From: Mobula birostris
Lineage: Eukaryota
Reading direction: 5' to 3'
DNA: 64,000 nucleotides
NCBI RefSeq assembly: GCF_030028105.1
Contig: NC_092383.1
Location: forward strand, 97,611,604 to 97,675,603
This document shows, in pieces, positions 4,551 to 49,445 of this stretch (its first letter is position 1; every line of letters starts with the position of its first letter). The translations under genes were made by a program, and so were the position numbers. The notes under the pieces were generated by a model that saw only the letters and a program-made list of their open reading frames with translations, was not told where the DNA came from and searched no databases.

Positions 4551-4602
4551 ATGTGGATGGTCTCGCCCCTGCTCTGTGTTGTCGCCTGGGTCGCCCGTGT
4601 GG
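4551..4602 (+). CDS. Exon 1: signal peptide MWMVSPLLCVVAWVARV(A)
   Basis: ATG at 4551, hydrophobic 17-mer, phase-1 donor G|gtaagg at 4603; joins exon 2 in frame to give ...VARVAGTG|DSSTTV, a plausible cleavage region. Confidence 0.75.
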
Positions 4603-15925: not shown

Positions 15926-16619
15926 TTGACTTTAGTCTCCAGTACATACAGTAAGTGGAGCGAGAAACGGCTCAGCCTGAGTTCCAGTTTAGCAACAGGT
16001 CAATGAGCTGTGATATTGAACGGTGGTTACATGAGGTTGCCTCCTGCTTCTGTATCAGAGGAAATATTTCTCAACTCATCATACTGCCGAATTCTCCTAC
16101 TTTCTCTCCACCCACACTGCAGTGATTATCAGCTCCCCCCGCAACCTGTTCACAAAACCTCGGCCAGGAGCAACAAACCGCCTCACCTTCTCCCTCACTC
16201 CTCCTTCAGGGATCCGTGGATGTGCCCGACAAGGCCCCACTCCGAGCTCCCTCTGTCCCTCACAGCACTCACGAACTTCCATTTATCACATGTTCCCTCA
16301 ACACGTTCGCCTCCCCAAGCACCTCACCCAACCCTTCTCCCGACTGGCTCTCATTTTTCATGCCTGTGCCCCTCTGACCTGCCTTTGATATCTGGCTGCA
16401 GGCTGCAACTTCCATCCTCCGGACTCGGTGCAAAGAGTCTTCACTCTGTTCCTCCCTTGAGCTTACCGTGTACTGTTGGAATGGTGGTCTGCTTCTCTCA
16501 CAGGGCCGGGAGACAAACAATGAGACCCATCACCCACTCTTGTAACTCTGATTCTCCCAGTCTGATTCATCCTCCAGTTACTGAGCTCATCTGCTGACTG
16601 TCTCCTCTTGTCTCCTCAG

Positions 16620-16940
16620 CTGGGACTGGGGATTCCTCTACCACTGTGAACGGAACTCGGGGACGCTCAGTCTCCTTACCTCCTGGGATACCAGTCGGAC
16701 CAGACATTGCTCAGCTTGTGTGGAGACGGTTCTCACCCAGGGCGAAGATAGTGACATATTCAAACAAGAACAGTGACTATTACGGATCTGAGGAGTACAA
16801 GAGACGGATAATTCTTCATCCCAGGAACTTCAGTCTGGAAATCCATGATCTACAGAAAAGTGACTCTGATGATTATGAGGTGTCTGTTACAGCATTTTCA
16901 GGAGCACAGACTCAGAACAAAATGCGACTGGAGGTGTACG
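16620..16940 (+). CDS. Exon 2: N-terminal IgV domain, CD2/SLAM type (no cysteines)
   Basis: Acceptor ttgtctcctcag|, donor G|gtgagt; (A)GTGDSSTTVNGTRGRSVSLP..LVWR..YKRRIILHPRNFSLEIHDLQKSDSDDYEV..LEVY; lacks the B-F disulfide, as CD2-family V domains usually do. Confidence 0.92.
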
Positions 16941-17689
16941 GTGAGTGAGACACCACGGAGAGGCTCAGGTTTCTTCGGTTCCTGAAACACCCCCAATTAA
17001 TGGGTGAGGGCAGATCCTGTGTGCTTCCCTGTTTACTGAACCCTACTGACCGCCCGTGTCCAGAGCTGGGCTCATGGTCCCAGTGTAGTGGGATTGAGAC
17101 AGTCTGGGGAACACACTTACCACATCCCCTGAGACTGAGTCAGAGCCCGAGAAGAAGTAATGATGACTCTCATTATTCTGAGTCCAGAGGAAATCAGCAC
17201 TTAGGTGGACTATGGAAGATGTGGTTACAGGGTGAGCGTTTAAACAGCATTTGGCCAGGTTCATGGATGAAAGGTCTGGAGGCAAATGGGACTAGCTTAG
17301 AACAGCACAGAGATTGTTGAGTTGGGCTGAATGGCCTCTTTCCATTGATGTTTCTCTACTTGACCCATGGGAACCTGAACTGAACAATGGACCCATAAGG
17401 TGGGAGGATCTGTAAAGGGGGTGAGTGGTCTGTGGGTCACTGTATCCCCAGTTAAAGATCTGGTCTGTCATGTTCAGGGATTCAAGTTATCCCATCAGTT
17501 TCCCAGGGCACTACTTGTTAATTGCCCAGACTGAGCTCAGCAAAGTGTTTATTCCTCAGCCTTCATGCTGTGCTGTGCTGACTGATACCCTGTGTACTCA
17601 TTACACTGAATATAGTGTCCCAGTGAGTGACACGGTACACGGGCACAACAGCACACTCACACACACCAATATGGTTCCTGACTCACTCT

Positions 17690-18127
17690 AGCAATAACAT
17701 TACATTCAAAGTAGACTGCAGACTGCAATATCGAAACAGTGATCTGTTTGTTGGTCTCCTCTCTCGCTGTGGAAGGGACGACACCTCTCTCTCCCTGTGG
17801 CATGTTGAAGTGCTGGTTTGTGGACTATAGTTTTTGATGGACCTCGATCATGGTCTCTTTGGGGGTTTGCTATCGCTTGCCTGAAGGTGGTGTGGGGCTG
17901 ATGCTTCCTGCTGGAATGTGGGTGAAACGGGAAGTGGGGAAGGTTCATGCTTTGCTGCCACTTGTGCGTGAGAGGGGGGTGGGGGGACTTTGTGGTTCCA
18001 ACATTTTTCTGTCAGTCATTCTTTGGGGTTTTCTTCTGTTTCGTGGATGTCTGTGAAGTGTGAGAATTTCAGGTTGGATACTGTATGCATTCTCTGATAT
18101 TAAATTGAACCAATGAACCATTGAAAA
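17690..18127 (+). mobile_element. Unclassified abundant non-LTR 3'-end family
   Basis: Ends in attaaattgaaccaatgaaccattgaa tail; homologous to 11385-11745 and 55740-56470 in reverse orientation. Confidence 0.55.
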
Positions 18128-18859
18128 TAATCTCACCCAGCAACATCCATCTGAAGTTTGGCTGAGAAATGTTCTCTCTTCCATCCCAGGGTTAACTGGT
18201 TTCCATTGGAGGGATAACATTAGAAAATGAGAAATAGGGGTAGCAGGCCAATCCGCCCCCAAGCCTAGTCCTGTCAGGGTTGGTTTGGCAGCCTCAGGTC
18301 CACTTTCCTGCCTGTTCCCCACACCCACAACTCCTCGTCTCTGTGTGAAATGGGCAGACACTTATTCTGATGCTGTGTCCTCACTCTAGGTTCCACCCTC
18401 TACCCCACAAGGTGGCGCATCCTCGTAGCTCCCCCGACTGTTGATTCACTCCAGGCAGGTCCTGTCCTTGACTATTTCACACCTGCTCCCAGTCTTTGTG
18501 ATCATTGCTGTCACTTGGTAACTTTACCAACTAAGGGCATTAACCCCTCTTCATCTGTTACAACTTCAGTGAGACAGAGGACACCTAAATAGTCTCACCA
18601 AGAACTCCCAATTAATTCTGACCTGAAAAGCATGGACCCAAGCTCTGTAATGAAGACAGGGAGTTTATTTAACTATCATGGAGAAACAGAGTCGACACTT
18701 AACAATACAATTACTGACAGTGAGACTCCAATGTTTTCAATGGCTTGATCAGCTCCATTCATAGATCCTGCTGGCTGCTCCATCTACGTCATCCAGACGT
18801 CTGCTGATATTCCGCAGCTCTGCCTTTCCCTGTTCTCCCAGAGGATGTCAGAGGTCATA

Positions 18860-19915
18860 GATTGTTTTGGCTGAATTATTCAGCTATTGCTGCCTCTCTG
18901 ACTGGATGTCTGTGACAAGGCGAGTGCTGCAGGGATTTGTGCTAGGTCCATTGTTGTTTGCCATCTATATCAACGACCTGGGCAATAATGTGGTTAACTG
19001 GATCAGCAAATTTGCAGATGACATCAAGATTAGGGATATAGTAGACAGCAAGGAAGACCATCAGATCTTGCAGCGGGGTCTGGACCAGCTGAAAATGGAC
19101 TGAAAAATGGCACATGGAATTTAATGCCGATAAGTGTGACGTGTTTTTCTTTGGTAGGACCAACCAGGGTAGATCTTACACTGTGAATGGTATGCCACTG
19201 AGAAGTGTAGTAGAACGAAGGGATATAGTAATACAGGTCTATAATTCATCGGAAGTGGTGTCAGAGGTAGATAGGGTCGTAAAGAAGAATTTTGGAACAT
19301 TAGCCTTCATAAAGCAAAGTATTGAGTACAGGAGTTGGCATGTTAGTTGAAGTTGCATAAAATGTTGATGAGGCCTACTTTGGAATATTATGTGCGGTGT
19401 TGGTCACCTGCCTACAGGAAAGATGTAAATAAGGTTGAAAGAGTGCAGAGAAAATTTACAAGGTTGTTGCCGGGTCTGGAAGATGTGAGTTATAAGGAAA
19501 GATTGAATAGGTTAGGACATTATTCCTTGGAATGTAAAAGACTGAGGGGACACTTGATTGAGATATACAAAATTATGAGGGTATAAATAGAGTAAATGCA
19601 AACAGGCTTTTTTTCACTGCAGTTGGGTAGGACTACAAACAGAGGTCATGGGTTAAGGGTGAAAGGTGAAAAGTTTAGGGGGAACATGAGGGAAAAATTC
19701 TTCACAGAGGGTCATGAGAATATGAAATGAGCTGTCACCAGAAGGGCAAGCTCAATTTCAACAGTTAAGAGAAGTTTGGACAGGTACATGTATGGTACTG
19801 TATGGAGAGCTATGTTCCCGGCACTGGTCGATTGGAGCAGACAGTTTAAATGATTTTGGCATGGAGCAGATGGACCAAAGATCTGTTACTGTGCTGTAAT
19901 CTTCTATGACTTGAT
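18860..19915 (+). mobile_element. CR1 LINE 3' part (degraded RT to tail)
   Basis: VLQGFVLGPLLFAIYINDL..FADD, MEFNADKC and RPTLEYYV..WSP motifs in ORFs 18867, 19114 and 19347. Confidence 0.9.
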
Positions 19916-20169
19916 GACTGTTCTAAACTCTGGGATGGTGTCTTTTCTATGTTGTAAGTGAATTGCGGACAAGTGTACATGGATAGGAGGCTGGTTTCCA
20001 TGATATACTTAGTTGTGTTCACAACTCTCTGCAGTTTCTTACGGTCACATACAAAACAGTTGCCATAACAAGTGTGATGCACCCATGATGCTTTCTATGG
20101 TGCATCTACAAAAGCTGGTGAGGGTTAAAGGGGACATGCCAATGGTTTTTAGTGTGTTGAAGTGCTGTT

Positions 20170-20420
20170 CTTTTCTGCGAGTGAGTGGGCTGGGGACTGT
20201 TATTATTGCAGTTAATTTTTGTGAGTGAGGGGTTTGGGGACTGTTACTGTCACTGTTCTTTTCTGCGAGTGAGGGGGCCAGGGACTGTTATTGTGGAAGT
20301 TAATTTTTGCGAGTGAGAGGGTCGGGGACTGTTATTGTGGCTGGTCTTTTCTGTGAGTGAGGGGTGTTGGGGATGGTCATTGTCACTTTTTTTTTTGCTG
20401 TGGGAAAGGGGGGATTTTGG
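20170..20420. repeat. Degenerate tandem repeat, about 45-50 bp units
   Basis: Recurring ttttctgcgagtgag...ggggactgttatt, about 5 copies. Confidence 0.7.
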
Positions 20421-21490
20421 GGACTGTGACTTCTGTTTCTTCTCTTTTTTTGTGTCCGGGAAGAGTTAATGGCTTTTCATTCAGCAATACCATTTCTTTC
20501 TGTGTTTGGTGGCTATCTGAAGTAGAGACATATCAGAGTTGTATTGTACACACATACTTATGAAGCTTTGAACCTTTATTGAGTTTGACCAGGACTGTCT
20601 ATCGGTGATGTTCAGTCCTGCGAACTTCAGCCTTCTCAGCTTCGACACTGTTGTGGTTAAGGATTGTCTATCCTCACTCTCCGCACCACCCACCCCCAAC
20701 ATTTTGAAGTCAATGACCAACTCTTGTTTTACTGACATTGAGAAAGATGGCTGTCATGGCAATACATCACTAGGCTCTTTACCTCACTCCTCGGCTCTGA
20801 CTCATCATTATTTGAGATTTGGCCGACTATGGTGGTGCTACTGCCAACTGAGGGGATGAGAGGTGATCACACTGAAACATCCAAACACCTCATCGGGTTC
20901 TGCAGGATGGAGCCCTGGCTGGAGTGATAGAATATGAGCTCAGCTGCTCCAGACTAAGAGAGGATGAAATACACGGGAGAAATCACACCCAGAGGGTAGT
21001 GAATTTTCACAGCTCTTTACTAAACAGCACTACAGAAGTTCAGTCACATGGGGTATTCAACGTAGATGTGGATGGTTTTTGGATATCAAGGGAATTAAAG
21101 GATGTGAGTTTGGTGCAGGAAAATGAGGTGGAGGGCAATCAGCCATGAATGGGGCAGCAGACAGGAAGGGGCTGAATGGTCAAACATAAAGTTTCTACTG
21201 AACAATTAAATGGAGCTGGAATGAATTCCTGCAATACAGAGACATCAGCAAGACATGACGCAGCTTTATGAGTAACTCTTGTGAAAGAGGGTGCAGCACT
21301 TGTGGGAACTTCCTCCAGCAGTAACTGGCTGAACTGAAGGGTGAGAGAAGAGTTAAACTGTTGGGTTGGAAATGAGTTGGGATTGGCATAAATTTCATTT
21401 GTTTCTGTTGGGATGGAATGCGGGAGTTGGGGATTAAGGTGTCGATAAGGATCTTCTTAATTCACCTTTCTTTTTCTGTCTCGACCTCAG

Positions 21491-21757
21491 ATCCTGTGTC
21501 AGGTACAGTCATCATGGTTCAGTACATCGTCAAGACTTGCAATATCATCTTGATCTGCTCTGAAGATTCAGGCAACTCCATTTTCAGGTGGTGGAGGGGA
21601 GGAGAAGTTGTGGGAACTGGCAGCTACTATCACCTCCAGCAGCATGGAGAGGCGAAAGGGGACGAAGAAGTCCTGTATAAGTGTGAGGCCCGGAACCCCG
21701 TCAGTAACGAAATGACAGAGGTCTGGCTGGGAGACATCTGTGGAAAGAACAAATCTG
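21491..21757 (+). CDS. Exon 3: IgC2 domain, CD2/SLAM type
   Basis: Acceptor ..ctcgacctcag|, donor G|gtgagt; (D)PVS..TCNIILICS..FRWWRG..YKCEARNPVS..DIC: four-cysteine pattern and the ARNPVS motif diagnostic of SLAM/CD2 C2 domains. Confidence 0.93.
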
Positions 21758-23012
21758 GTGAGTGTCAGAGGGAGCAATTGGAATTTAGAGAGGCTGCCCA
21801 GACTGTTCAATAAGATAGTGCTGATGGAGTTTTACTTTGTGTCTAATCTGCGCCCTTTTACAAAAAAAAGTTTACATACATTCACTGACTTTCATGAGAA
21901 TGGTTCTCATTTTAAAACATGGACATCCCTGTCCAGGACACATTCCAGTCCCGGAATATCCACTGATCGAAGAAGACATGGTATGCTTCCTTCCCCAGGG
22001 ACACCTGAGCATGGACATTTCCTCAGAAGAGGCACAGGCATTTGGTTCAGTCAGGAACCTCGATAGCTCTTTGTCAGGAACTAGGAATTCCAGGCTGAGG
22101 TAGACAGACAACAAATTTTCCTCCTCACTGGGTTGACTCTTGCTGTCCTGTGCTGGCTCTTGGTCTGGGGAAGGTTTCTTCACCCCAGTCATCTGGGAGC
22201 TGTCCACACAAGACTGTAATCAACCTTTCTTCCCACACAGCCTTGGGAGATGTGGGCCATTCACCTGGGGGTGTGGAGGAAGTTCACTGGGGTTAAACAA
22301 AATCAGTGCATTTATAACCCCACCCCACGGATTTGTCATCCTCTCCAAACACCCTCAACATTGCTCTGCCAGACTGACATTATATAACAGAAGGAAAGCT
22401 TTTCCTTTTGTGCAAGAATAAACTGTTCTCTGTGTGCTCACTCCCTCCACTGAGGCTGATGACAGTCTGGGCCCTCCCCACCTCCCCCTCTTTTCCATTG
22501 TCCCACACACTGACTGGCGATTTCCAATTGTAAATTCAGCTGAGTATTTCTTTATAAATATGATTTTCATATTAACATACACACTCGCATTGCAATATGT
22601 ACATAATTGAAGTTAACACATTGCCCTCTAGAGAGCCCATGTGCTCCTTCTCCTGGGACACGCAGGTATGGACACAACTCCAGAAGAAGGGCATTTGGCT
22701 CAGGGAAAACCCTCAAGTGGCCACCACTTGGATCCGAAAATGGTCACCTTGGCCAGGCCCAAGAGCAGACCGATCTGGAGAATTCCCAAGAGACTCACCT
22801 GCCTTTGCATTGAGTGACCAAAGGTCACAAGGGTAGGGCTGAGGTGCAGCAGACCTTGAGGTACAGTGCCTTCACATGGTTCAGTAGTCCTACAGCCTCT
22901 CACACTCCATATATACATGATACACTCTCTCCTCAAGGCTGCAGAAATGAGAGGTGGCTAGGGAGCCCGTTAATTGACTTGGGAACCTGTCACACAACAT
23001 TCTCTTCTCCAG

Positions 23013-23188
23013 GCCCCAGTGTCCAGTGTGAAAAACTGAAGAGTTTGCAGGAGCAGCCTGCAAAAGAAATACCTCTGCTCCTGGAGAAATGTCATAGAGA
23101 GGCCAGATCTCAAGAGGAGCCTCTGAGCCTTGGTCTGATGAATAGTTCTGGCCGTGGGTGGCAATCTGGTCTGAACGACCCTCAGTGA
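23013..23188 (+). CDS. Candidate alternative terminal exon (would give a secreted L-V-C2 form, 271 aa)
   Basis: Strong acceptor attctcttctccag|GC, phase 1, open to TGA at 23186-23188 (GPSVQCEKLKSLQEQPAKE...). No transcript evidence and no clear nearby polyA signal. Confidence 0.3.
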
Positions 23189-24734
23189 TGAGTCTCCTCA
23201 ACACCCGTTGTGACAGAACGGCCGGAGGCTTCAGCTATGAGTCTCATCCAATCCACTGCTTCATCCACCCACCCATCCATGGAGCCAGAAAGTCTCTCAC
23301 TGCTGGTGGAGGAACACTCTGAATGAAGGTGACCGTCCCAGTTCAGTACAACAGAGCAGGACAGCTGATATCTATTGCTGGGAGTCCTCCCGAGGGACAG
23401 TGTCTCTGGTAGATACACCACACCACCAGTCTGGGAGGATGCCCAGTGTGAAGATAACCCTGCAGGGTCTGAAAGTGGAACATTTCAGCCTGCCCTGTCC
23501 TAGAGGTCTGTGTTGAGACATTGTAGATGGGTTTGACTCTGTATGTAACCCTAGCCTGCCCTGTCCTAGAGGTGTGTGTCGGGACATTGTAGAGGGTTTG
23601 ACTGTATATAAACCCAGCTCTCCCTGGTGTGGGAACCCATAATGATGGGCCCACAGATGTTGGGAACTCATGAAACTGAGGAAGGTCATGTGGCCCATTG
23701 TGAACCAGCTCTGAAATTACTGAATCACCAGAAGATTTCAGCAAATGTGGCTCTTCAGCCTGTCAATTCCTGCTAGCTTCATGCTGTATCAGTCCAGCTC
23801 ATTTCACATATTCACACCTCTCTCTCTCTCTCTCATTCAGTGAGAGAGTGACTGGTCCTATTCATGCAGGGTTTGATCTGTGTGAGGACCATCATGGCCT
23901 CCACCTCCCCTCCCAACACATGACAATGTTTTCCCTGGAGTACACTCCCCACTTCCCTCTCACCGTTCGGTCTAGTACTTTCTGTGGCTCTTGGTATTGT
24001 CTTCTCTGCCCAGAGACAGAGATCCTTTCTGTTTAGTCAGAGACCCTCATCGTTTCACCACCCTATTAAATCTGCCCTCAGCCTCTGTTCCCTCATTGTG
24101 CCATGACCCCTCCATCAACCTTCCCCAGCCCTGTTCCATCCACAGAGCTCTCTTGTCCTGCCTCAGCTCTGACCATCCCCACCCAGACATTCATTATCCC
24201 CGTTCACAGATCTGGGATCCTGATCAACAAATGCAGGGATACAGACTGCCTCACCCTCTTGTCATTCCTCATTCAAAGATCTGTGGGCAAGTTCCCTTTG
24301 TCCCTCCACACCACTTACACTCTCCCATTCATCCCACCTTCCCTCATCATGTTCACCTTCCCCAAACAGTACCCCCACTGCATCCGTGGATGGGGTCCAA
24401 TTTGTCATGTCTGTGCCCCACCACGCCCAGCTCTGCCCCCTCTATTGATATCTGGCTGCAAGTTGCAACTTCCTTCCTCAGGACCAGGTGCAAGAAGTCT
24501 TCACTCTTCCCTGTGTGGGCTCAGTGTGGCCCAGCTCTCTCACTGGGCTGGGACCCAGACAATGTGCCAGCAGACTCCCCTCAAGCCATCAGGCTAATCT
24601 ACACCTCCACCGATAAACCCACCACCATTATGTTGTAACTTCCTGTCAGAGTAACATAATGTACAGATATTCCACTACCTATTGTCACTTTATGAACATG
24701 CAATCAGTTTATGTACATCAGCTACTCTTATGTA

Positions 24735-24845
24735 GGATTTCGGCCCAAAATGTCAACCGTTTATTCATTTCCATTGATGCTGCCTGACCTGCTGAGTTCC
24801 TCCAGCATTTTGTGTTTTGCTTTGGGTTTCCAGCATCCGCTGCCT
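24735..24845 (+). mobile_element. Penelope-like terminal repeat remnant inside a Rex-type 3' end
   Basis: gatttcggcccaaaatgtcaaccg..gatgctgcctgacctgctgagttcctccagcattttgtg..ccagcatc. Confidence 0.7.
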
Positions 24846-24963
24846 GTCTCATGTCTATGTTTATTGTTTTGTTTATGCTTCATGTTTTTTTTATGCTACA
24901 TCGGATCCAGTGACAATTATTTTGTTCTCCGTTACACTTGTGTACTGAAGTGTGACAATAAAC

Positions 24964-26219
24964 TGTCATGGTCCGGATCGGGGTCCCTTTAAATTTACTT
25001 TGTTTATGTTACGATCCGGACCGTTGACTCCCTGTTGCCCTTTGGTTCCCTGTTTTCCCGTGTCTCTCGGCTTTGGTGATTGGAGGCAATTTACTCTCGA
25101 CTGAACCGATAGTTTATGGTCTCCGGCTTTCAGCCGTTCGGCGCAAGAGCGTTTGCAAAGTCGCCAAAGGTACAGTGTGCCAATGTCATCTGGCCGGAGC
25201 AAGCCTAGTCTCCGCCCGAAGCGAGTGCCGGTAATTCGCCTTTCCTCACCGGAGCAACCCTGTCAAGTTACCTTGCCAAAGCGAGCTTGCAAAGTTTCCT
25301 CACCGAGGTGGGTCCGTCAGTTAACCCACCGGAGGGAATCAAGAACCGCTGTCCACTGTTTCCGGGCCGAGTCGAGAGCTCGCCACTACCCAGAGGCTCC
25401 AAATCAGGTCCGGCTCCAGGGGCATCCAAGTACCAAGTCGAGTCCCGGCCCTGGCGGCATCCAAGTACTGAGTCGAGTCCCGGCCCTGGTGGTCTATGAT
25501 TCCTGTCCTACCCCACTGTCTGAACCCCTTCTCTGTCCCTCTCGCCTCTCGCCCTTGTCTGCAGCCCTTGCCTGCACTTCGGTCTAGTTCTATTGCCGGA
25601 GCTAGATAGGTACTGTCTGGTGTTCTTTTGTGTTGGTCTCATCTTGTCCTTGCCTCCATGGGGTAAGTATGAACACCTTGCCATTGCCCCGCAGGGGGTC
25701 ATGTCTTGTCATATCTTGTCCTCACCTCCGTGGGGTAAGTCAGGCCGTCTTGCCATTGCCCCGTGGGGGTGTCATGAGTCCCGGCCCTATGTCCTGTACC
25801 CAAGGAGGGGTCCCGACTCTGTGTTCTGTGTATGTGTCCATGGTTCCATGTGCCTGCTCTCCCAAGACTGAGGTTCTGTTTTTCCATGTTCCTCCTCTCC
25901 CTAGCCCCTGTCATGTCCATGCCTGGTTCTGGGGTCCAAGCCCGGGGCAAGACCCAGGTACTGGGTCCTTGCCCAGTCTCTGGCTCGGAGTCCATACCCT
26001 AGCCTCTTCATGTCACTGCTGGTTCTGGGATCCAATTCCGAGTCCTAGCCCAGACCCCTAGTCCCAGCCTAGTCGTAGTCCTGAGTCCTTGTCCAGTTCG
26101 CTATTCCTGCTTCTGCTTTGCTCTCCTGGTATCAAACAATAAACTCAATTTAATTAACCTCACAAGATGTGTCTTGCATTTCGGTCCACCCTTGCTCCCA
26201 ATGCCCCACCATTGTGACA
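24964..26219 (+). mobile_element. Solo LTR (Gypsy/BEL-type), copy 1
   Basis: TGTCA...TGACA termini, AATAAA near the 3' end, 5-bp TSD taaac (24959-24963 / 26220-26224); homologous end to end to 46665-47870. Confidence 0.88.
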
Positions 26220-26327
26220 TAAACAACCTTGGATTTGAATCCTGAAACTTGAAATGGCTGCTCCTGTGTCTGTGATTCCTCAGCACTAATTCCTCCTCCT
26301 GATAACTGTTTTCACTTGTCTCCTCAG

Positions 26328-26636
26328 ATGAGATTCTCGTCCTGGAAGGTGCCCTCGGAAAAGTGGCTCGGTTAACTCCTGAGATCCTAAAAGCACCAAA
26401 AATTACCAATGTTGTGTGGAGAATATTATCAGACTCAACCAAGATAGCAGAATGCATGAATGGGAAATTGACATATCTCAATACTAAAAAGTACAAGCAA
26501 CGGATAAAATGTCATCCAGGGGACTGTAGTTTAATAATCCATGATCAACAGAAAGAGGACACTGATGTTTATGAGGTGATTGTTACAGCAAGTACAGGAA
26601 CACGGACTAGGAGGAAAGTGCAACTGAAGGTAGCTG
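26328..26636 (+). CDS. Exon 4: second IgV domain (paralogue of exon 2)
   Basis: Acceptor ttgtctcctcag|, donor G|gtaagt; (D)EILVLEGALG..VVWR..YKQRIKCHPGDCSLIIHDQQKEDTDVYEV..LKVA; gap-free alignment to exon 2. Confidence 0.9.
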
Positions 26637-27159
26637 GTAAGTGAGATACTGTGAAGGGGTCCGGGTTTCACCAGTTCCTGAAACACCCCTAATTAATGGG
26701 TGAGGGCAGATCCTGTGTGTTCCCCTGTTTTCTGAGCCCCACTGTCTGCCCGTGTCCAGAGCTGGGCTCATGGTCCCAGTGTAGTGGGATTGAGCCAGTG
26801 TGAGGCTCGAGGACACACTTACCACATCCCCAGAGACTGGACCAGAGGCTGTGAAGCAACAAACTGCCAATGGGAAACCACATGACTCTGAGGCTGGAGG
26901 AGCTGAGTACATATGGAGTGGAAAACAGAGCAATAGCCAATGGGGTGGGAGGGACTGTAATGGATGGGCCAAATGGTCTATATCTGTGGGTCACGGTTAA
27001 ACAGATCCCACAGCATCTCCAGGTCAAAGGTATGGTCTGTCATGTTCAGGGATCCCAGTTCCGTCTATTTCTCAGAGCACTGCTTGCTAATGGCCCAGAC
27101 TGCGGTCTGAGCTCAGCAAAGTACACAGATACAAGAGCACACCCACACCCAGCATAACA

Positions 27160-32075: not shown

Positions 32076-32971
32076 CCTTAGGAGATATAACCACAGTACA
32101 ATCCAGTAACAACAGCACAGGGGAGGAGAGATAAATTATGGTGGGGCAGGGAGTGGAAGTGTGGGTTGGGGGATCTGTTCCTGCTCTCCTGTGCTGGGTC
32201 TTTGACATTGTGCGGCCTCTTCACCCAGGATTGTTGAGGCCTCACAAAAGCCCCTGATATAAAAATCAATCTTCTTCATGCAGAGAGGCCCGGCTGACCT
32301 GGGCTGTGCACTTTACCATCACACTCTTTCACTGTCACACCCAGGTGATCTTCCAGCCTCTACCAACAGTATTTCATTCCACAGTCACCAATCATAGAGT
32401 GTAAGGAACATTGTCATCTCCACCTACTACCTGCTCCCCTCTTTCCCACCAGCATCAGTCAGAGGGAGACAGATCACCTCCCTCCATCTCCGCAGCAGAT
32501 GCATATACCGACTGAGCACAGATTCCTGCACTAACTCAGGCTCTGCGAGTGGGTGATGGGTCAGTGCAAACGGAGCTTGCCTCTGTGTCTAATTCCTGTC
32601 CTGTGAGTGTGCAAGGGCTGTGTCACCATTTCATACTAGAAGCAGTCAGTCAGTCAGAGTGTGCTGGGGGAGAGGGGTTACTGAGGGTCTGAGTGAGGGT
32701 GCTGGACTAACATCATATGAGGATACTGTCAGAGACATTGGAGACTACAATTAGAAGGGACGATATGGGGCTGTTTGGAGCGGATGGAGATATTCAAGGT
32801 GAGCGGGGTGGTGGAGCAGAGTGATGTGGGGCTGACTAGAGAGGACTGGGGCACGGTGTTGCAGTGACAGGGAGTTTTCTCTGGCCTGTGGTGGGATGGA
32901 CTGGATCCATCAATTCCTTGTCACTGGGAGTGTAAGGATGGGATTAATGACAGAATCTTTTATCTCCCCAG

Positions 32972-33112
32972 ATCCAGATCTCAGAACATCATACAATGGT
33001 TGGAAGGTCGCCACCGTGATCCTCATTGTGATCGTCGTGATCCTCATTCTGTATCTGGTTTATAATAAATACTGCATAAAGCTGCGTGATTCTCGCTCAC
33101 GTGGGAACAAAG
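32972..33112 (+). CDS. Exon 5: stalk, transmembrane helix and start of cytoplasmic tail
   Basis: Acceptor ttttatctccccag|, donor G|gtaagg; (D)PDLRTSYNGWK-VATVILIVIVVILILYLVY-NKYCIKLRDSRSRGNK. Confidence 0.85.
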
Positions 33113-34599: not shown

Positions 34600-36150
34600 C
34601 GATTATATCAGATGAAATTTCAGGATACTTGGAAGCAGGCGATAGAATAGGGTGAAGTTCGCACAATTTTGTTCTGATTCTTTGAGAAGGTAACAGGCCA
34701 GCTGAGAAAGGAGAGTAAGCTTCAGCAATTTACAAGTACTTTCACAAGGTATTTGACAAAGTTACACCCACGAGGCTATTGAACAAGATAATTCAAAATT
34801 TTGAAAGGGATAGATAAGATGGAAGTAGGAAAGTTGTTTCCATTGCTCGGTGAGACAAGAACTAGGGGATATTACCTCAAGATTCAGGGGAGAAGATTTA
34901 GGATGGAGATGAGGAGAAAATGTTTTTCCCAGGGAGTGGTTAATCTGTGGAATTCTCTGCCCAGGGAAGCAGTTGAGGCTTCCTCACAAGATATATTTAA
35001 GAAACAGTTAAATAGGTTTTTACACAGTAAGGGAATTAAGGGTTATGGGGAAAAGGCAGGTAGATGGAGATGAGTTTATGGACAGATCAGCCATGATCTT
35101 ATTGAATGGTGGGGCAGGCTCGATGGGCTGGATGGCCTACTCCTGCTCCTATTTCTTATGTTCTTATGTTTTTAAGAGCCCATGGCATCATTGGTAAGGT
35201 ACAGCATGGATAGAAGATTGTCTGACTGGCAGAAGTTAGAGAGAGTGGGGATATAAATGCTCTTTTTCGAACACCTGCCACAGACCAACGGAGTATCAAA
35301 GGTTTCTGGGCTGGGACGGTACCTTTTCACATTACACGTGAATGATCTCGATGAAGGAGCAGATGGCATTGTGGATATATCAGGATCAAGATAGCCCGGA
35401 GGTACAGTTGGTGTCACAGAGGCACAGAGTCGAGTCTGCTGCAGGACCTGGAGAGGTTGGGAGAATAGGCAAAGATGACTCTGAGAGGAAGAATAATGTT
35501 GTAGCCTGGAATGAAATGGACAGACAATTCGCGTTGAGTCAGTATTAAAGAAGGGGAATGAATTGTTAGTATTTAGTTTGGAAGGGTGTGGATATAATAG
35601 CAAGAACAAACTGCTGAGGCTTTGTAAGGAGTTGCTTAGACCCCATATGGAATATTGTGAACAATTTGTGTACTGTATCTAAGGAAATATGTGCTGCCTC
35701 TGGAGAGGGTCCAGATAATGTTCACAAGAATAATTGCCGGAGTGGAAGTCTTCAGGTATGAGGAGTGTTTGGCAGCTTTGGGCCTGAAAAGGATGGACCT
35801 CAGAAGAGTGATGGAAAGGATTCACTAAATCATAACAGGTACTGAAACGCCTGGATGACATGAAGGTGCAGAGGATGTTTGTCAGTGGGAGAGTCCAGGA
35901 CACAAGGGCACAGACTCAGAATAAAGAGATGTGCTTTTGGAACTGAGGTGAGAAGGAGTTTTTTCAGCCAGAGGCCAGGAATCTGGAATTTAAGGATGAG
36001 ATTGAAAGGTTTTCAATTGGTAGAGTAGTTCAGGGTTACAGAGAAAAGGCAGGAGAGTGGGGCTGCATAAGGAACCAACCACAGTAAAATGATGGAACAG
36101 GCTCAAAGGGCTAAATGTCTTAAATTTCCTCTTATATTTTATGGTCTTAC
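34600..36150 (+). mobile_element. Old CR1 RT-to-tail fragment with a younger CR1 3' end nested at about 34797-35170
   Basis: The old copy reads through as aacaagata|..|agagcccatggc; the nested piece has ORF 34801..35073 and a (cttatgtt)n tail. Confidence 0.8.
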
Positions 36151-36224
36151 GGATCTGCAGTAAATTGTGCTGACCACACTCCTCGATCTTTGACTCTCCA
36201 TTTCCTGTTCCTTATCCTGCACAC

Positions 36225-36662
36225 ACCCGATCACTGGGGTATACTGCCCTCACACCTGGTCACTCGGGTACACTGCCCCCAAACTCCCGGTCACTGGGGT
36301 ACCCTATCCTCCCACACACCCCATCACTGGGGTACACTGTCCCTGCACACCCAGTTGCTGGGGTACACTGCGCCCCCCCCCACACCAAATCACTGGGTCA
36401 CACTGTCCCCACACACCCAGTCACTGGGTCACACTGTCTCCACACACCCAGTCACTGGGTCACACTGTCTCCACCCACCCAGTCACTAGGTCACACTGTC
36501 TCCACACACCCAGTCACTTGGTCACACTGTCCCCACACACCCAGTCATTGTCCAACACAGACAATCACTGGGTCACACTGTTCCCACACACCCAGTCATT
36601 TTCCCACACAGACAGTCACTGGGTCACACTGTCCTCACACACCCAGTCATTGTCCCCACACA
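36225..36662. repeat. Minisatellite, 30-31 bp unit (cacacccagtcactgggtcacactgtc..), about 13 copies
   Basis: Directly visible tandem array; each unit contains the palindrome cccagtcactggg or a variant. Confidence 0.92.
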
Positions 36663-37362
36663 TATGGTTCGTCTTCATTGTCGCTATCTTTCAAGGTCGA
36701 GGATGATGGTCTTCGTTCCATAAATAGTGAAGACGCCTGTGCGTGTATTTGTTTAACGTGTACTTGATGTTGCACTCCAAGAAGCACACGATACTTCACA
36801 AATCAACCAACTGATTCCAATGGCATGGAAACCACGACGATTGGAGCTGATGGATTGGTTGCTGCCTTCATCCGCCTTCACAGCCGCTGAGTTCGAAGTA
36901 ACTTCGTCCGCCTGTTCCACTGTTGAGGTCATGGTTGGAGTACTGGAGTACTCAGTAACATAGGATTACCGGAGGACTCTGTACCCCTCATAACTAGTTA
37001 CTGGTGTACAATGTTCCCTACACACCCACTTACTGGGATTTACTGTCCTCCACACACCCAATTGTGAGATGTGGTGGGGAGACTTTGACTTGTGTGGGTG
37101 TGATGTTTTGCAGGATATTGACCAGTGTGAGAGATAGAGGCAGAGTAACTAAAGTGAGGTTTATGGGACATGTCAGTGGAGATGAGAATGAGGAAGGGAG
37201 TCGGGGTGTTGTGATTTGTGGCAGTCGAGGTGACATTGCAGAGGATGAGTAGGGACCAGATGAACATATCTCACGTTGAGGGTCACTGGGAGATTCTGTG
37301 GAGGGGAGGCCAGGTATCAGTATCACGACTGGAAGCCCTTAACTCTGCTCTCTATTCCACAG

Positions 37363-37427
37363 GCCAAGTGGAGACCCAGCCTTTGGAAAATCAAAAGAAG
37401 GAGCCTGCAACTGATGCCCCGGAATAG
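37363..37427 (+). CDS. Exon 6b: terminal coding exon, tail (G)QVETQPLENQKKEPATDAPE*
   Basis: Acceptor ctctctattccacag|GC, phase 1, TAG at 37425-37427. Confidence 0.65.
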
Positions 37428-37904
37428 AACCCAGCTCACAGATACCCCCTCCTTCGGGACAGCGAGTACCTCTCCAAACCCAATCACTGGGAAACGTTGC
37501 CCACACCCTCCTGGGTGTGTTAGGGGTTAGTCCTCCCCTCTACTGGAACCCCTGCCTTTGTTCAACAATTCCAAATTGCTTTATATACTGTGGGTTCCGC
37601 AGTGACTGGTGATAACCCCACTCCTGGATCTGGGATCCTCTCTACTGCACACAGGCCCATGTCCACTACTCGTCCACCTGACTCTCCCTCCTTTTCCTCC
37701 CTGCTGCTCAGATCTAACACTGCCCACCTTTCCTCCTGACTCTAGTCCTCAGAATTTACAACTTTCTTGTCCTCTCCTGTGTCCCCACTCAAAGCCCTGT
37801 GCCTACATCATTCCCCAACATCCCCACACTCTGTTATCACAGAATGCTCTGTTCATTTTCTCACATTTTTTTTTCTCTTCCTCTAACCTACCTGGGTAAA
37901 ATCA

Positions 37905-46643: not shown

Positions 46644-46664
46644 TTTCATTCCAAAATCTTCCTC

Positions 46665-47870
46665 TGTCATGGTCCGGATCGGGGCCCCTTTAAATTTACC
46701 TTGTTTATGTTACGATCCGGACCATTGATTCCCTGTTTTCCTGTGTCCCTCGACTTTGGTGATTAGAGGCAATTAACACTCGGCTGAACCGGTAGTTTAT
46801 AGTCTCCGGCTTTCAGCCGTTCGGTGGGAGAGCGTCTGCAAAGTCATCAAAGCTACGGTGTGCCGATGTCATCTGGCCGCAGCAAGCCTCGTCTCTTCCG
46901 AAGCGAGTGCCTCTCCTCACCGGAGCAACCCTGTCCAGTTACCTCGCCGAAGCGAGCCTGCAATGTTTCCTCACCGAGGTGGGTTTACCCGCCGGAGGGA
47001 ATCAAGAACCGCTGTTTACTGTTCCCGGGCCGAGACGAGAGCTCGCCACTACCCGGAGGCTCCAAGTCAAGTCCTGGCTCCGGGGGCATTCAAGCAGCAA
47101 GTCAAGTCCTTGTCCTGGTGGCATTCAAGCAGCAAGTCAAGTCCTGGCTCTGGCGGCATTCAAGCAGTAAGTCATGTCCTGTTCCTGGTGGCTTCCAAGT
47201 TCTGAGTCAAGTCCTGGCGGTCTGTGATTCCTGTCCTACCCCCTTGTCTGAATCCCTTCTCTGCCCCTCTCGCCTCTAGCCCTCGTCTGCAGCCCCCGCC
47301 TGCACTTCAGTCTAGTTCCATCGCCGGAGCTCGGTAAGTACTGTCTGGTGTTCATTCGTGTTGGTCTTGTCTTGTCCTGTCCTCTGTGGGGTAACTCAGG
47401 CTGTCTCGTCGTTGCCCCGCGGAGAGTCATGAGTCCCAGCCCTATGTCCTGTACCCAAGGAGGGGTCCCGGCTCTCTGTTCTGTGTATGTGTCTATGGTT
47501 CCATGTACCTGCTCTCCCGAGACCGAGGCTCTGTTTTCACGTTCCTCCTCTCCCTAGCCCATGTCACGTCCTTGCCTAGTTCTGGGGTCCGAGCCCGAGG
47601 CAAGACCCAGGTACTGGGTCCTTGCCCAGTCTCGGGCTCGGAGTCCATACCCTAGCCTCTTCATGTCTCCTCTAATTCTGGGAGCGGATTCCGAGTCCTA
47701 GCCCAGACCCTTGGTCCCAGTCTAGGCATAGTCCTCAGTCCTCGGCCAGTTCGCTACTCCTGCTCCTACCTAGCTCTCCAGATATCGAACAATAAACTAA
47801 ATTTAATTGACCTCACAAGATGTCTTGCATTTGGGTCCACCCTTTCTCCCAAACCCCCGCCATTGCGATA
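46665..47870 (+). mobile_element. Solo LTR, copy 2 (same family as 24964-26219)
   Basis: Starts TGTCATGGTCCGGATC, ends ..gcgata (decayed gtgaca); 5-bp TSD tcctc (46660-46664 / 47871-47875); internal ~33-bp tandem repeats near 47065-47220. Confidence 0.88.
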
Positions 47871-49445
47871 TCCTCATGGTGTGCTTCTCAATGTCTTTGT
47901 TCCCATAGGGAGGTTATAGAACAGGACCAATGAGGGATTGTTCCTTTCCTGTGTCTGACTTCCACCGGTATTACAAGTGGACGAGCCCTCCGTGGCTGAG
48001 AAGTATTTGAGCTACATTTCTTTCATTTCAGTTGGTCTGTTATTTTGAACTAGTTCATTGGTGTAAGCTCATGGGATAATTCGAGACGATAAAGAGCTTT
48101 GAAATATTAAGAGGACGGTAGATGCTTCGCTATCCTGACGACAGAAAACCATTTCAGTATTCCTGAATCTGAGATTTGGCATTGTTTTATTTTGGATTGT
48201 GTAATTTGGACTAGATTAACAAGCCTAGTTTGAAAAACTGCTTTGGGGTGTTCTGCCATCCTGAGATTTCTTTTTGCACTCTGCTGCAATAGTTCATTTC
48301 CAGGCTTTGCTGGAAGATTTGAAGACATTTATGTGATTAAAGTTCTGGCTCAGTTTGAGGGTGTTTCTTTGTTTTTGTGGCTCAATGACATTTCCTGGTC
48401 TTTATGTGCTGAATAATTGGTCAATCTCGATAAATTCGGAGGATAAGACCGTTTGTCTAAAGAGATTGTCATTGCAGTCACAGCTCTCAAAGGCTTTCTG
48501 ATGGATTTATGTTGAAGACCCGTGTCATCTGTAATCCTGTGGTTGAAGATTATTCTGAGAAAACATAAGATGCTTTATACGATTTTCATTCTGAAAGTTT
48601 GGATAATAGTGCGATGTTCGTCTCTTTATAGTGAAGATTTTATCATTTCCTTTTCCTAGCTACTGTCCGAGGAAAGTGCAGAAGTCTTGGGTTCTACCTT
48701 GCAAGGTCTGATCTCGTAGGTTCCTCGCTGGGGACAAATTTCGGGGGACTTTGAAGTACATGGTGCATGTGCTTGACACTGGTTATTCTCTTTTTTAAAT
48801 GTTCATGAGCAGTTTAATCGGGCACTTCGTCGAAGAGTGTCTTTGAGGTCCGCAGTCGGCTAGCAGTGCGGGGGGGAAATGAATGAACCAAATTGAGTAG
48901 TCCTGTACTGCGGGTTGATGTTTGATATTCTATGTGTTGTTCACTCGCTTTTTCCCGTTTGTATAATTTGTTTTTTTTTCACGGTGGGTTTTTAATGTTT
49001 TCTGTGAACTGGTTCCATGCTGTTTCTTTGCTTCGTGTCTGCGTGTGGAATGACGAATCTCAGAATTCTGTTATGTAGACCCGCACATTCTTTATTAATA
49101 AATGTACTTTGAATCTGTTATGGACTAGTCTGTTGTGTTAATTTCTATCGTTTTATGGATCTGAGATTTTGGATTCTGAGAAAGTGATTTTTCTGCGTCA
49201 CTTATTGGATCTATTTGTTCTGGTTTTCCAGACATATGAACCAAATAACTATCTGCTCTTTAATGTCCGTGATTTAAGGTGTGTTTTTTTTTGAATTTCT
49301 GAGCCACCGCACGTGTTTATTACTTCAGTAGTAATTCGATGTATATCCTGGGAGAGCATATGGTTCTGAGAAGCTCTGTTGAAAATCTTTATTTGTATAA
49401 GCATGTTATACTGTATTATGTTTTATTGTACACATATATGCACTA

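Follow-up and report, generated by a model that had tools for sequence, protein, structure and literature searches.

Two V-set exons of one receptor gene in the manta Mobula birostris are each followed, at a fixed distance from the splice donor, by a short intron element that is more conserved than the exon itself. The gene lies in a 64,000-nt stretch of contig NC_092383.1 (NCBI RefSeq assembly GCF_030028105.1, positions 97,611,604 to 97,675,603), hereafter the window; coordinates are those of the window, and all features described are on the forward (+) strand. Here, we report the analysis of this gene, which is predicted to encode a CD2/SLAM-family surface receptor, and of its two V exons, V1 (16620 to 16940) and V2 (26328 to 26636). 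The explanation that we regard as probable combines a single CD2/SLAM gene, V exons that would evolve at a near-neutral rate or faster, an old V2, and a constrained intron element. An initial annotation of the window had taken the contrast between the exons and their flanking introns as a signature of diversifying selection; one intron tract is a poor neutral baseline, and the apparent selection signal would come mostly from the constrained element.

The element starts at +38 after the donor of both V1 and V2. High identity between the two introns is confined to copy 1 (16978 to 17137, about 160 nt) and copy 2 (26674 to 26839), which match at 147 of 160 positions with one 6-nt indel (92%) and share a longest perfect run of 47 nt. 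Within this block, the initial annotation had counted 113 of 121 identical positions (16978 to 17098 versus 26674 to 26794), and that count is exact. The spacer between donor and block (16941 to 16977 behind V1) keeps its 37-nt length in both introns, with a sequence only 65% identical between V1 and V2 (Jukes-Cantor [JC] distance K, 0.47), and about 280 nt past the block cannot be aligned. The looser homologies reported earlier are real (self-blastn): an upstream block (16245 to 16447 versus 24290 to 24507) is 71.6% identical (JC K, 0.36), and a distal block (17438 to 17546 versus 27009 to 27122) is 76.9% identical, so that the remaining alignable pieces span 72 to 77% identity (JC K, 0.28 to 0.36). 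Because ordinary intron is about as diverged as the synonymous sites of the exons (dS, 0.44 to 0.52), the block is the outlier and the exon is not. The earlier statement that the exons diverge far faster than the introns thus holds for the one block of about 160 nt and fails elsewhere, in the spacer and the other pieces. Nor is the contrast evidence of selection on the exons, because the block is itself conserved and offers no neutral baseline.

Conservation of the block extends to skates. A genomic contig from Logan (L003) contains a V exon that matches, at 82% identity, the second V domain of a protein from Amblyraja radiata, and its source is therefore a skate. Its intron holds the start of the block, behind a spacer of the same 37 nt (within 1 nt). 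Between V1 and L003, the first 61 nt of the block match at 52 of 61 positions (85%), the exon at 69%, and the spacer at 20 of 37 (54%); between V2 and L003, the corresponding values are 54 of 61 (89%), 61%, and 23 of 37 (62%). Identity is higher in the block than in the exon (Fisher P, 0.012 for V1 and 2e-5 for V2) or in the spacer (0.001 and 0.004). dS between the V exons was 0.44 to 0.57, and the ratio of block to synonymous divergence obtained with the skate, applied to V1 and V2, predicts about 89% identity where 92 to 93% is observed; the observed value therefore needs no conversion. Since conversion between skate and manta is impossible, the conservation implies purifying selection or a mutational cold spot over at least these 61 nt. 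The block was also present in the DNA runs of four organisms, and a metagenome scan for its core gave no match.

Other skate similarities lie on the 5' side of the V exons. The 230 nt upstream of V1 (16390 to 16619) are 75% identical to a skate intron in a second contig (L001:1021-1250), and the exons are 70% identical. A stretch covering branch site, polypyrimidine tract and acceptor (CTGACTG..TCTTGTCTCCTCAG) hardly varies between V1 and the two skate copies; V2 keeps only its 3' part (CTTGTCTCCTCAG). Upstream of V2, repeat insertions (24734 to 26220; blastn) displace the upstream homology block by about 1.65 kb from the exon. They include a repeated element of about 1.2 kb just upstream of V2, with a 75 to 87% identical copy 21 kb downstream (46664 to 47871), and a short interspersed repeat (24734 to 24840) of which the window holds nine or more other copies.

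V1 and V2 are two V-set domains of one gene, in the order leader, V1, C2, V2, transmembrane (TM) segment and short tail. RNA contigs from four same-species runs (X1 to X4) join V1 to the C2 exon (16940>21491, GT..AG) in all four runs. The first 30 nt of V2 are the sequence trailing the C2 exon in these contigs, and its last 30 nt are the sequence ahead of the TM exon (both loose ends); a single 754-nt contig (run X4) spans the end of V1, C2, V2 and TM. The product of the spliced model (384 amino acids [aa]) is identical to a protein annotated as "SLAM family member 8-like" of Mobula birostris (P0113), and the gene span agrees as well. These splice joints and loose ends, which link leader, V1, C2, V2, TM and tail, together with the match to P0113, establish one gene rather than two. 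To cast V1 and V2 as a pair of duplicated genes locked in an arms race is therefore wrong: the RNA contigs carry both exons in one transcript, and V2 is an old lineage retained in four ray species. The second C2 or TM exon expected of two genes was sought by tblastn over the window, which found neither.

The leader (signal peptide) exon (4551 to 4602; MWMVSPLLCVVAWVARV; donor GT) is part of the P0113 model, and the loose end before V1 in X1/X2 contigs matches 4576 to 4601 exactly. V1 (321 nt, phase 1-1) encodes the N-terminal V-set domain and no cysteine, with support from RNA contigs, Pfam and a confident structure prediction. The C2-set exon (21491 to 21757; 267 nt, phase 1-1; four cysteines) is placed by the RNA joint in four runs and by the loose end into V2. 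V2 (309 nt, phase 1-1) encodes the diverged, membrane-proximal V-set domain with two lineage-specific cysteines and is backed by the X4 contig, Pfam and orthologues (four species in all). Both V exons have AG/GT borders. The TM exon (32972 to 33112; 141 nt, phase 1-1) is supported by the loose end of V2 and by contigs in all four runs, and the last coding exon (37363 to 37428; stop at 37426 to 37428), which encodes the short tail and no tyrosine, by the model translation and by a loose end after the TM exon that matches 37364 to 37393.

Several transcript variants were seen beside this model. In runs X3/X4, another leader (..LWLMLSISE), absent from the window and similar to the leader of a Mobula hypostoma protein (P0004), precedes V1, and in runs X1/X2 V1 is preceded by the 4551 to 4602 leader instead; the two could be alternative first exons or a haplotype difference between the run pairs. 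An X3/X4 contig joint goes back 320 nt (16619 to 16938) from the end of V1 to its start with one T between; it could come from a circular RNA made of this one exon or from V-to-V splicing in a paralogue whose exon ends are nearly the same. In the X1/X2 loose ends at 32971, the TM exon is also joined to a variant V2 3' end (ACTAAGACGAAAG..GGTAGAC), which could be allelic or could stem from a second V2-like exon at another genomic site. The annotated orthologue P0004 skips the TM exon and runs from V2 into the last exon in another frame (..KVAGQWRPSLWKIKRRS..), which would yield a secreted form. In the last intron, a stretch with three forward frames open for about 600 nt and a repeated motif (36124 to 36764; ..HTQSLGHTV..PSHWVTLSP..) looks like a minisatellite.

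Assignment to the CD2/SLAM family draws on profiles and a structural model. Pfam assigned V-set to both V domains (V1 alone, 32.5 bits), and Receptor_2B4 (PF11465) matched the whole protein at 27.3 bits against a cut-off of 21 and V1 alone at 17.7, under the cut-off. The AlphaFold model had a mean predicted local distance difference test (pLDDT) score of 81, with V1 at about 95, and its V1-C2 pair fits NTB-A, CD48, CD2 and CD58 (Foldseek target-normalised template-modelling score, 0.77 to 0.81; root-mean-square deviation, 2.9 to 3.7 Å; structural partners 2if7, 2dru, 1hnf, 1hng and 1ccz). V1 and V2 are V-set domains without the canonical B-F disulfide; the C2 cysteines C141, C147, C189 and C208 are invariant in four species, and two disulfides are predicted. 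No cytoplasmic immunoreceptor tyrosine-based switch motif (ITSM; TxYxxV/I) occurs in the tail (NKYCIKLRDSRSRGNKGQVETQPLENQKKEPATDAPE), whose only tyrosine lies at the membrane edge (NKYC). The model thus predicts a CD2/SLAM-type fold and membership in that receptor family.

A search of a representative library returned 112 proteins at E values up to 0.001. Among the top hits and the 66 relatives of P0004, those with a name belong to rays, sawfish and skates, under automatic labels of SLAM5-, SLAM8-, SLAM9-, CD48- or Ly-9-like; one weaker match came from the elephant shark Callorhinchus milii. Domain orders among the relatives include V-V-V, V-C2-V-C2 and V-V-C2-V, and three proteins (P0003, P0117 and P0009) carry near-identical V repeats. 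Protein searches with the V1 and V2 exon open reading frames gave no match, and 90% clusters of the Logan fragments had one member each.

As had been noted earlier, the V domains align without gaps at about 41% aa identity: anchored at the 3' ends, V1 and V2 share 41 of 102 residues and 60% of nucleotides (55, 61 and 65% at codon positions 1, 2 and 3). The observation that conserved residues mostly keep their codon was also borne out, with 35 of the 41 using the same codon and 6 differing synonymously. For the pair, the Nei-Gojobori method (NG86) gave a nonsynonymous divergence (dN) of 0.585, a dS of 0.518 and an omega (dN/dS) of 1.13, and the Goldman-Yang model (GY94, maximum likelihood) an omega of 1.55 to 1.6, not significantly different from 1 (2dlnL, about 2). 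The initial annotation had stated that a dN/dS not significantly above 1 would refute its claim of strong positive selection, and this is the outcome for the pair (1.13 to 1.6).

Two skate V exons (L001 and L003) were taken as DNA into further codon tests. Across V1, V2, L001 and L003, the tree-wide omega was 1.24 to 1.38 (P, 0.08 to 0.23 versus 1) and the six pairwise values were 0.73 to 1.28; the V2 branch, at 1.4 to 1.9, differed neither from the background nor from 1. Site model M2a was favored over M1a (2dlnL, 15.1; P, 5e-4; alternative topology, 11.9 and 0.003), with 16% of sites at omega 0 and 42 to 48% at omega of about 2.7 to 3. None of 60 simulations under the M1a null reached 15.1 (maximum, 9.4), and re-implemented code reproduced the site-model likelihoods. 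Positive selection is thus supported as a family-wide site class and not for the pair or the V2 branch: at the level of codon comparisons, diversifying selection on the V domains has support, but it is family-wide rather than V2-specific. The V exons of the batoid family would on this account evolve at an average rate that is about neutral or faster (omega, about 1 to 1.4), with roughly a sixth of V-domain sites forming a frozen framework and a large class positively selected. RNA contigs of runs X3/X4 also carry two variants in V1, both nonsynonymous (16658, CGG>TGG, R13W; 16860, AGT>AAT, S80N; V1-domain numbering).

V2 is an old lineage, kept in four myliobatiform species (mobulid and dasyatid rays). 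Proteins of the same architecture with a recognisable V2 occur in M. hypostoma, Hypanus sabinus and Hemitrygon akajei, and the V2-specific cysteines C256 and C280 are invariant in M. birostris and these three orthologues. A tree built from 73 V domains places the V2 domains of the four species in one clade, with 100/100 support, that follows the species tree, on a stem of 0.8 changes per site with the remaining 69 V domains on the opposite side. Identities for V1, C2 and V2 are 89, 90 and 85% within the Mobula pair and 72, 76 and 69% between manta and Hypanus. In relative-rate tests, V2 had 19 unique aa changes versus 7 in V1 with L001 as outgroup, which is significant, and 21 versus 13 with the second skate outgroup, which is not. 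Given the long stem and the similar later identities of the three domains, the excess divergence of V2 probably reflects mostly an old burst on the stem branch, followed by a pace about that of V1 and C2.

Gene conversion limited to the introns is the alternative that survives best, although we judge it unlikely. Under it, the V1 and V2 flanks would have been homogenised repeatedly or recently, and selection would have purged conversions that reached the exons, giving a peak of divergence of the opsin type. Such peaks of divergence flanked by homogenised introns are well described where paralogues undergo conversion (PMC3924837). The sharp borders of the tract and its 47-nt perfect run fit, as does the lower dS of the exon half adjoining the block (0.21 in the 3' half, 0.75 in the 5' one). 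Across neighbouring genes, V1-type exons cluster by lineage, and near-identical V repeats occur in the three relatives named above, both consistent with homogenisation or recent duplication. Against conversion, the first third of the block is conserved at 85 to 89% beside a skate V exon, where conversion with the manta is impossible; the intervening spacer, at 65% identity, excludes a single tract covering both exon and block; the flanks are too diverged to seed exchange beyond the block; and 13 substitutions and a 6-nt indel mean that any exchange was not recent. The conversion offered in the initial annotation is thus not needed within the gene, the block itself being conserved beside a skate V exon.

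A continuing arms race with a ligand or pathogen, specific to the exon pair, seems to us distinctly unlikely; in this reading the intron is a valid neutral reference and the V exons, chiefly V2, are driven apart. A domain-wide omega at or above 1, the positive site-class test, the excess of unique changes in V2 with L001 as outgroup and the two nonsynonymous V1 variants all speak for it. About 11 of 17 candidate sites also map to strands C, C', C'', F and G or their loops, but with some half of the domain belonging to this GFCC'C'' face, the mapping shows no clear enrichment. Omega for the pair and for the V2 branch is not significantly above 1 or above the background, most of the intron is as diverged as dS, and the rate excess loses significance with the second outgroup. 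The excess of V2 moreover sits on its old stem, and since then V2 has kept about the pace of V1 and C2.

In the explanation that we prefer, the block would be a constrained non-coding element that is carried along as V exons duplicate, and its constraint would make the exon look accelerated whenever the block serves as the baseline. The element keeps a constant distance to the 5' splice site and occurs once per V exon, which suggests a candidate cis-acting role in the pre-mRNA, such as exon definition or splice control across introns of 4.5 to 12 kb filled with retroelements; on these sequence features, a cis-acting pre-mRNA element is the most likely role. A bolder version, possible but doubtful in our estimate, is a V-exon "cassette signal": a pre-mRNA element of about 160 nt that predates the split of skates and rays, sits at +38 of every V-exon donor in the family and travels with the exon. 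If true, such a signal would let V exons be spliced at any new position and could explain the many V/C2 orders in batoids. That the block is instead a transcriptional enhancer or other DNA-level element, lying in V-exon introns by chance and kept for expression, is very unlikely: its conservation across orders, its absence from the RNA contigs and the lack of an RNA structure common to its two copies would suit such an element, which has no need of a fixed 37-nt donor distance or of one copy per V exon in the same gene.

Other identities were considered for the block. As a common repeat or short interspersed element it found no backing, with no third copy in the repeat-rich window (blastn and nhmmer) and no tRNA-like gene. 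As an exon it was rejected as well, since its words are absent from the RNA runs and read-through of the donor meets a stop at once.

The following points weigh against a constrained, functional element beside near-neutral or faster exons. Cross-species conservation is documented for 61 nt in one skate contig, and the 47-nt perfect run lies in the other 100 nt or so. At the donor of the L003 V exon, AT stands in place of GT, and 1 nt is deleted five bases before it (L003:1046-1060); the frame is open, although the exon may be dead or recently inactivated. Elasmobranch DNA is slow to change, and upstream of V1 the intron retains 75% identity with a skate copy. Regarding function, no credible Rfam match was found for the block, its folding z-scores were +0.6 and -3.2 with no fold common to both copies, and G-run enrichment, a sign of splicing enhancers, was not distinctive. 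The codon tests were our own implementation, applied to four deeply diverged paralogues under a constant synonymous rate. An old conversion could have left its mark in the lower dS of the exon's 3' half, and the grouping of V1-type exons by lineage rather than by gene could reflect homogenisation or, equally, lineage-specific duplication.

The gene is annotated and belongs to a known family, and the pattern is of a known kind. Modestly new are a V-C2-V receptor whose second V domain has been remodelled and a candidate for a conserved, exon-linked regulatory element common to rays and skates, and a fast-evolving, unstudied CD2/SLAM-like receptor family in rays is now described. Like CD2, CD48, CD58, NTB-A/SLAMF6, 2B4 and the tail-less or ITSM-less members SLAMF8 and SLAMF9, the manta receptor has an N-terminal V-set without the disulfide, a four-cysteine C2-set in second place, phase 1-1 exons and a single TM segment. 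It differs in its third, membrane-proximal V-set domain, in a tail without the ITSM of the SAP-binding members and in being part of a large expansion in batoids, whose members vary widely in domain order. Ly9/SLAMF3 (V-C2-V-C2, from internal duplication) is likewise SLAM-type with a second V after the first C2, and several ray relatives are auto-named "Ly-9-like"; in contrast, the manta gene has no second C2 between V2 and TM (tblastn of the window; RNA joint V2>TM), and its V2 is far more diverged from V1 (41%).

The block itself resembles known exon-linked intronic elements, such as splicing enhancers near 5' splice sites and Dscam-type selectors, in that each variable exon has a single element of its own, set at a constant distance to the splice site. 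Unlike in the Dscam type, V1 and V2 of the manta both occur in the same transcript and are not mutually exclusive, and no complementary docking sequence was found in the window. With the red/green opsin-type mosaic (Teshima and Innan; reviewed in PMC3924837), the manta gene shares paralogous exons that are more diverged than an adjacent intron tract. The manta tract, however, is short, lies behind a diverged spacer and is conserved in another ray order, a difference that points to constraint rather than exchange.

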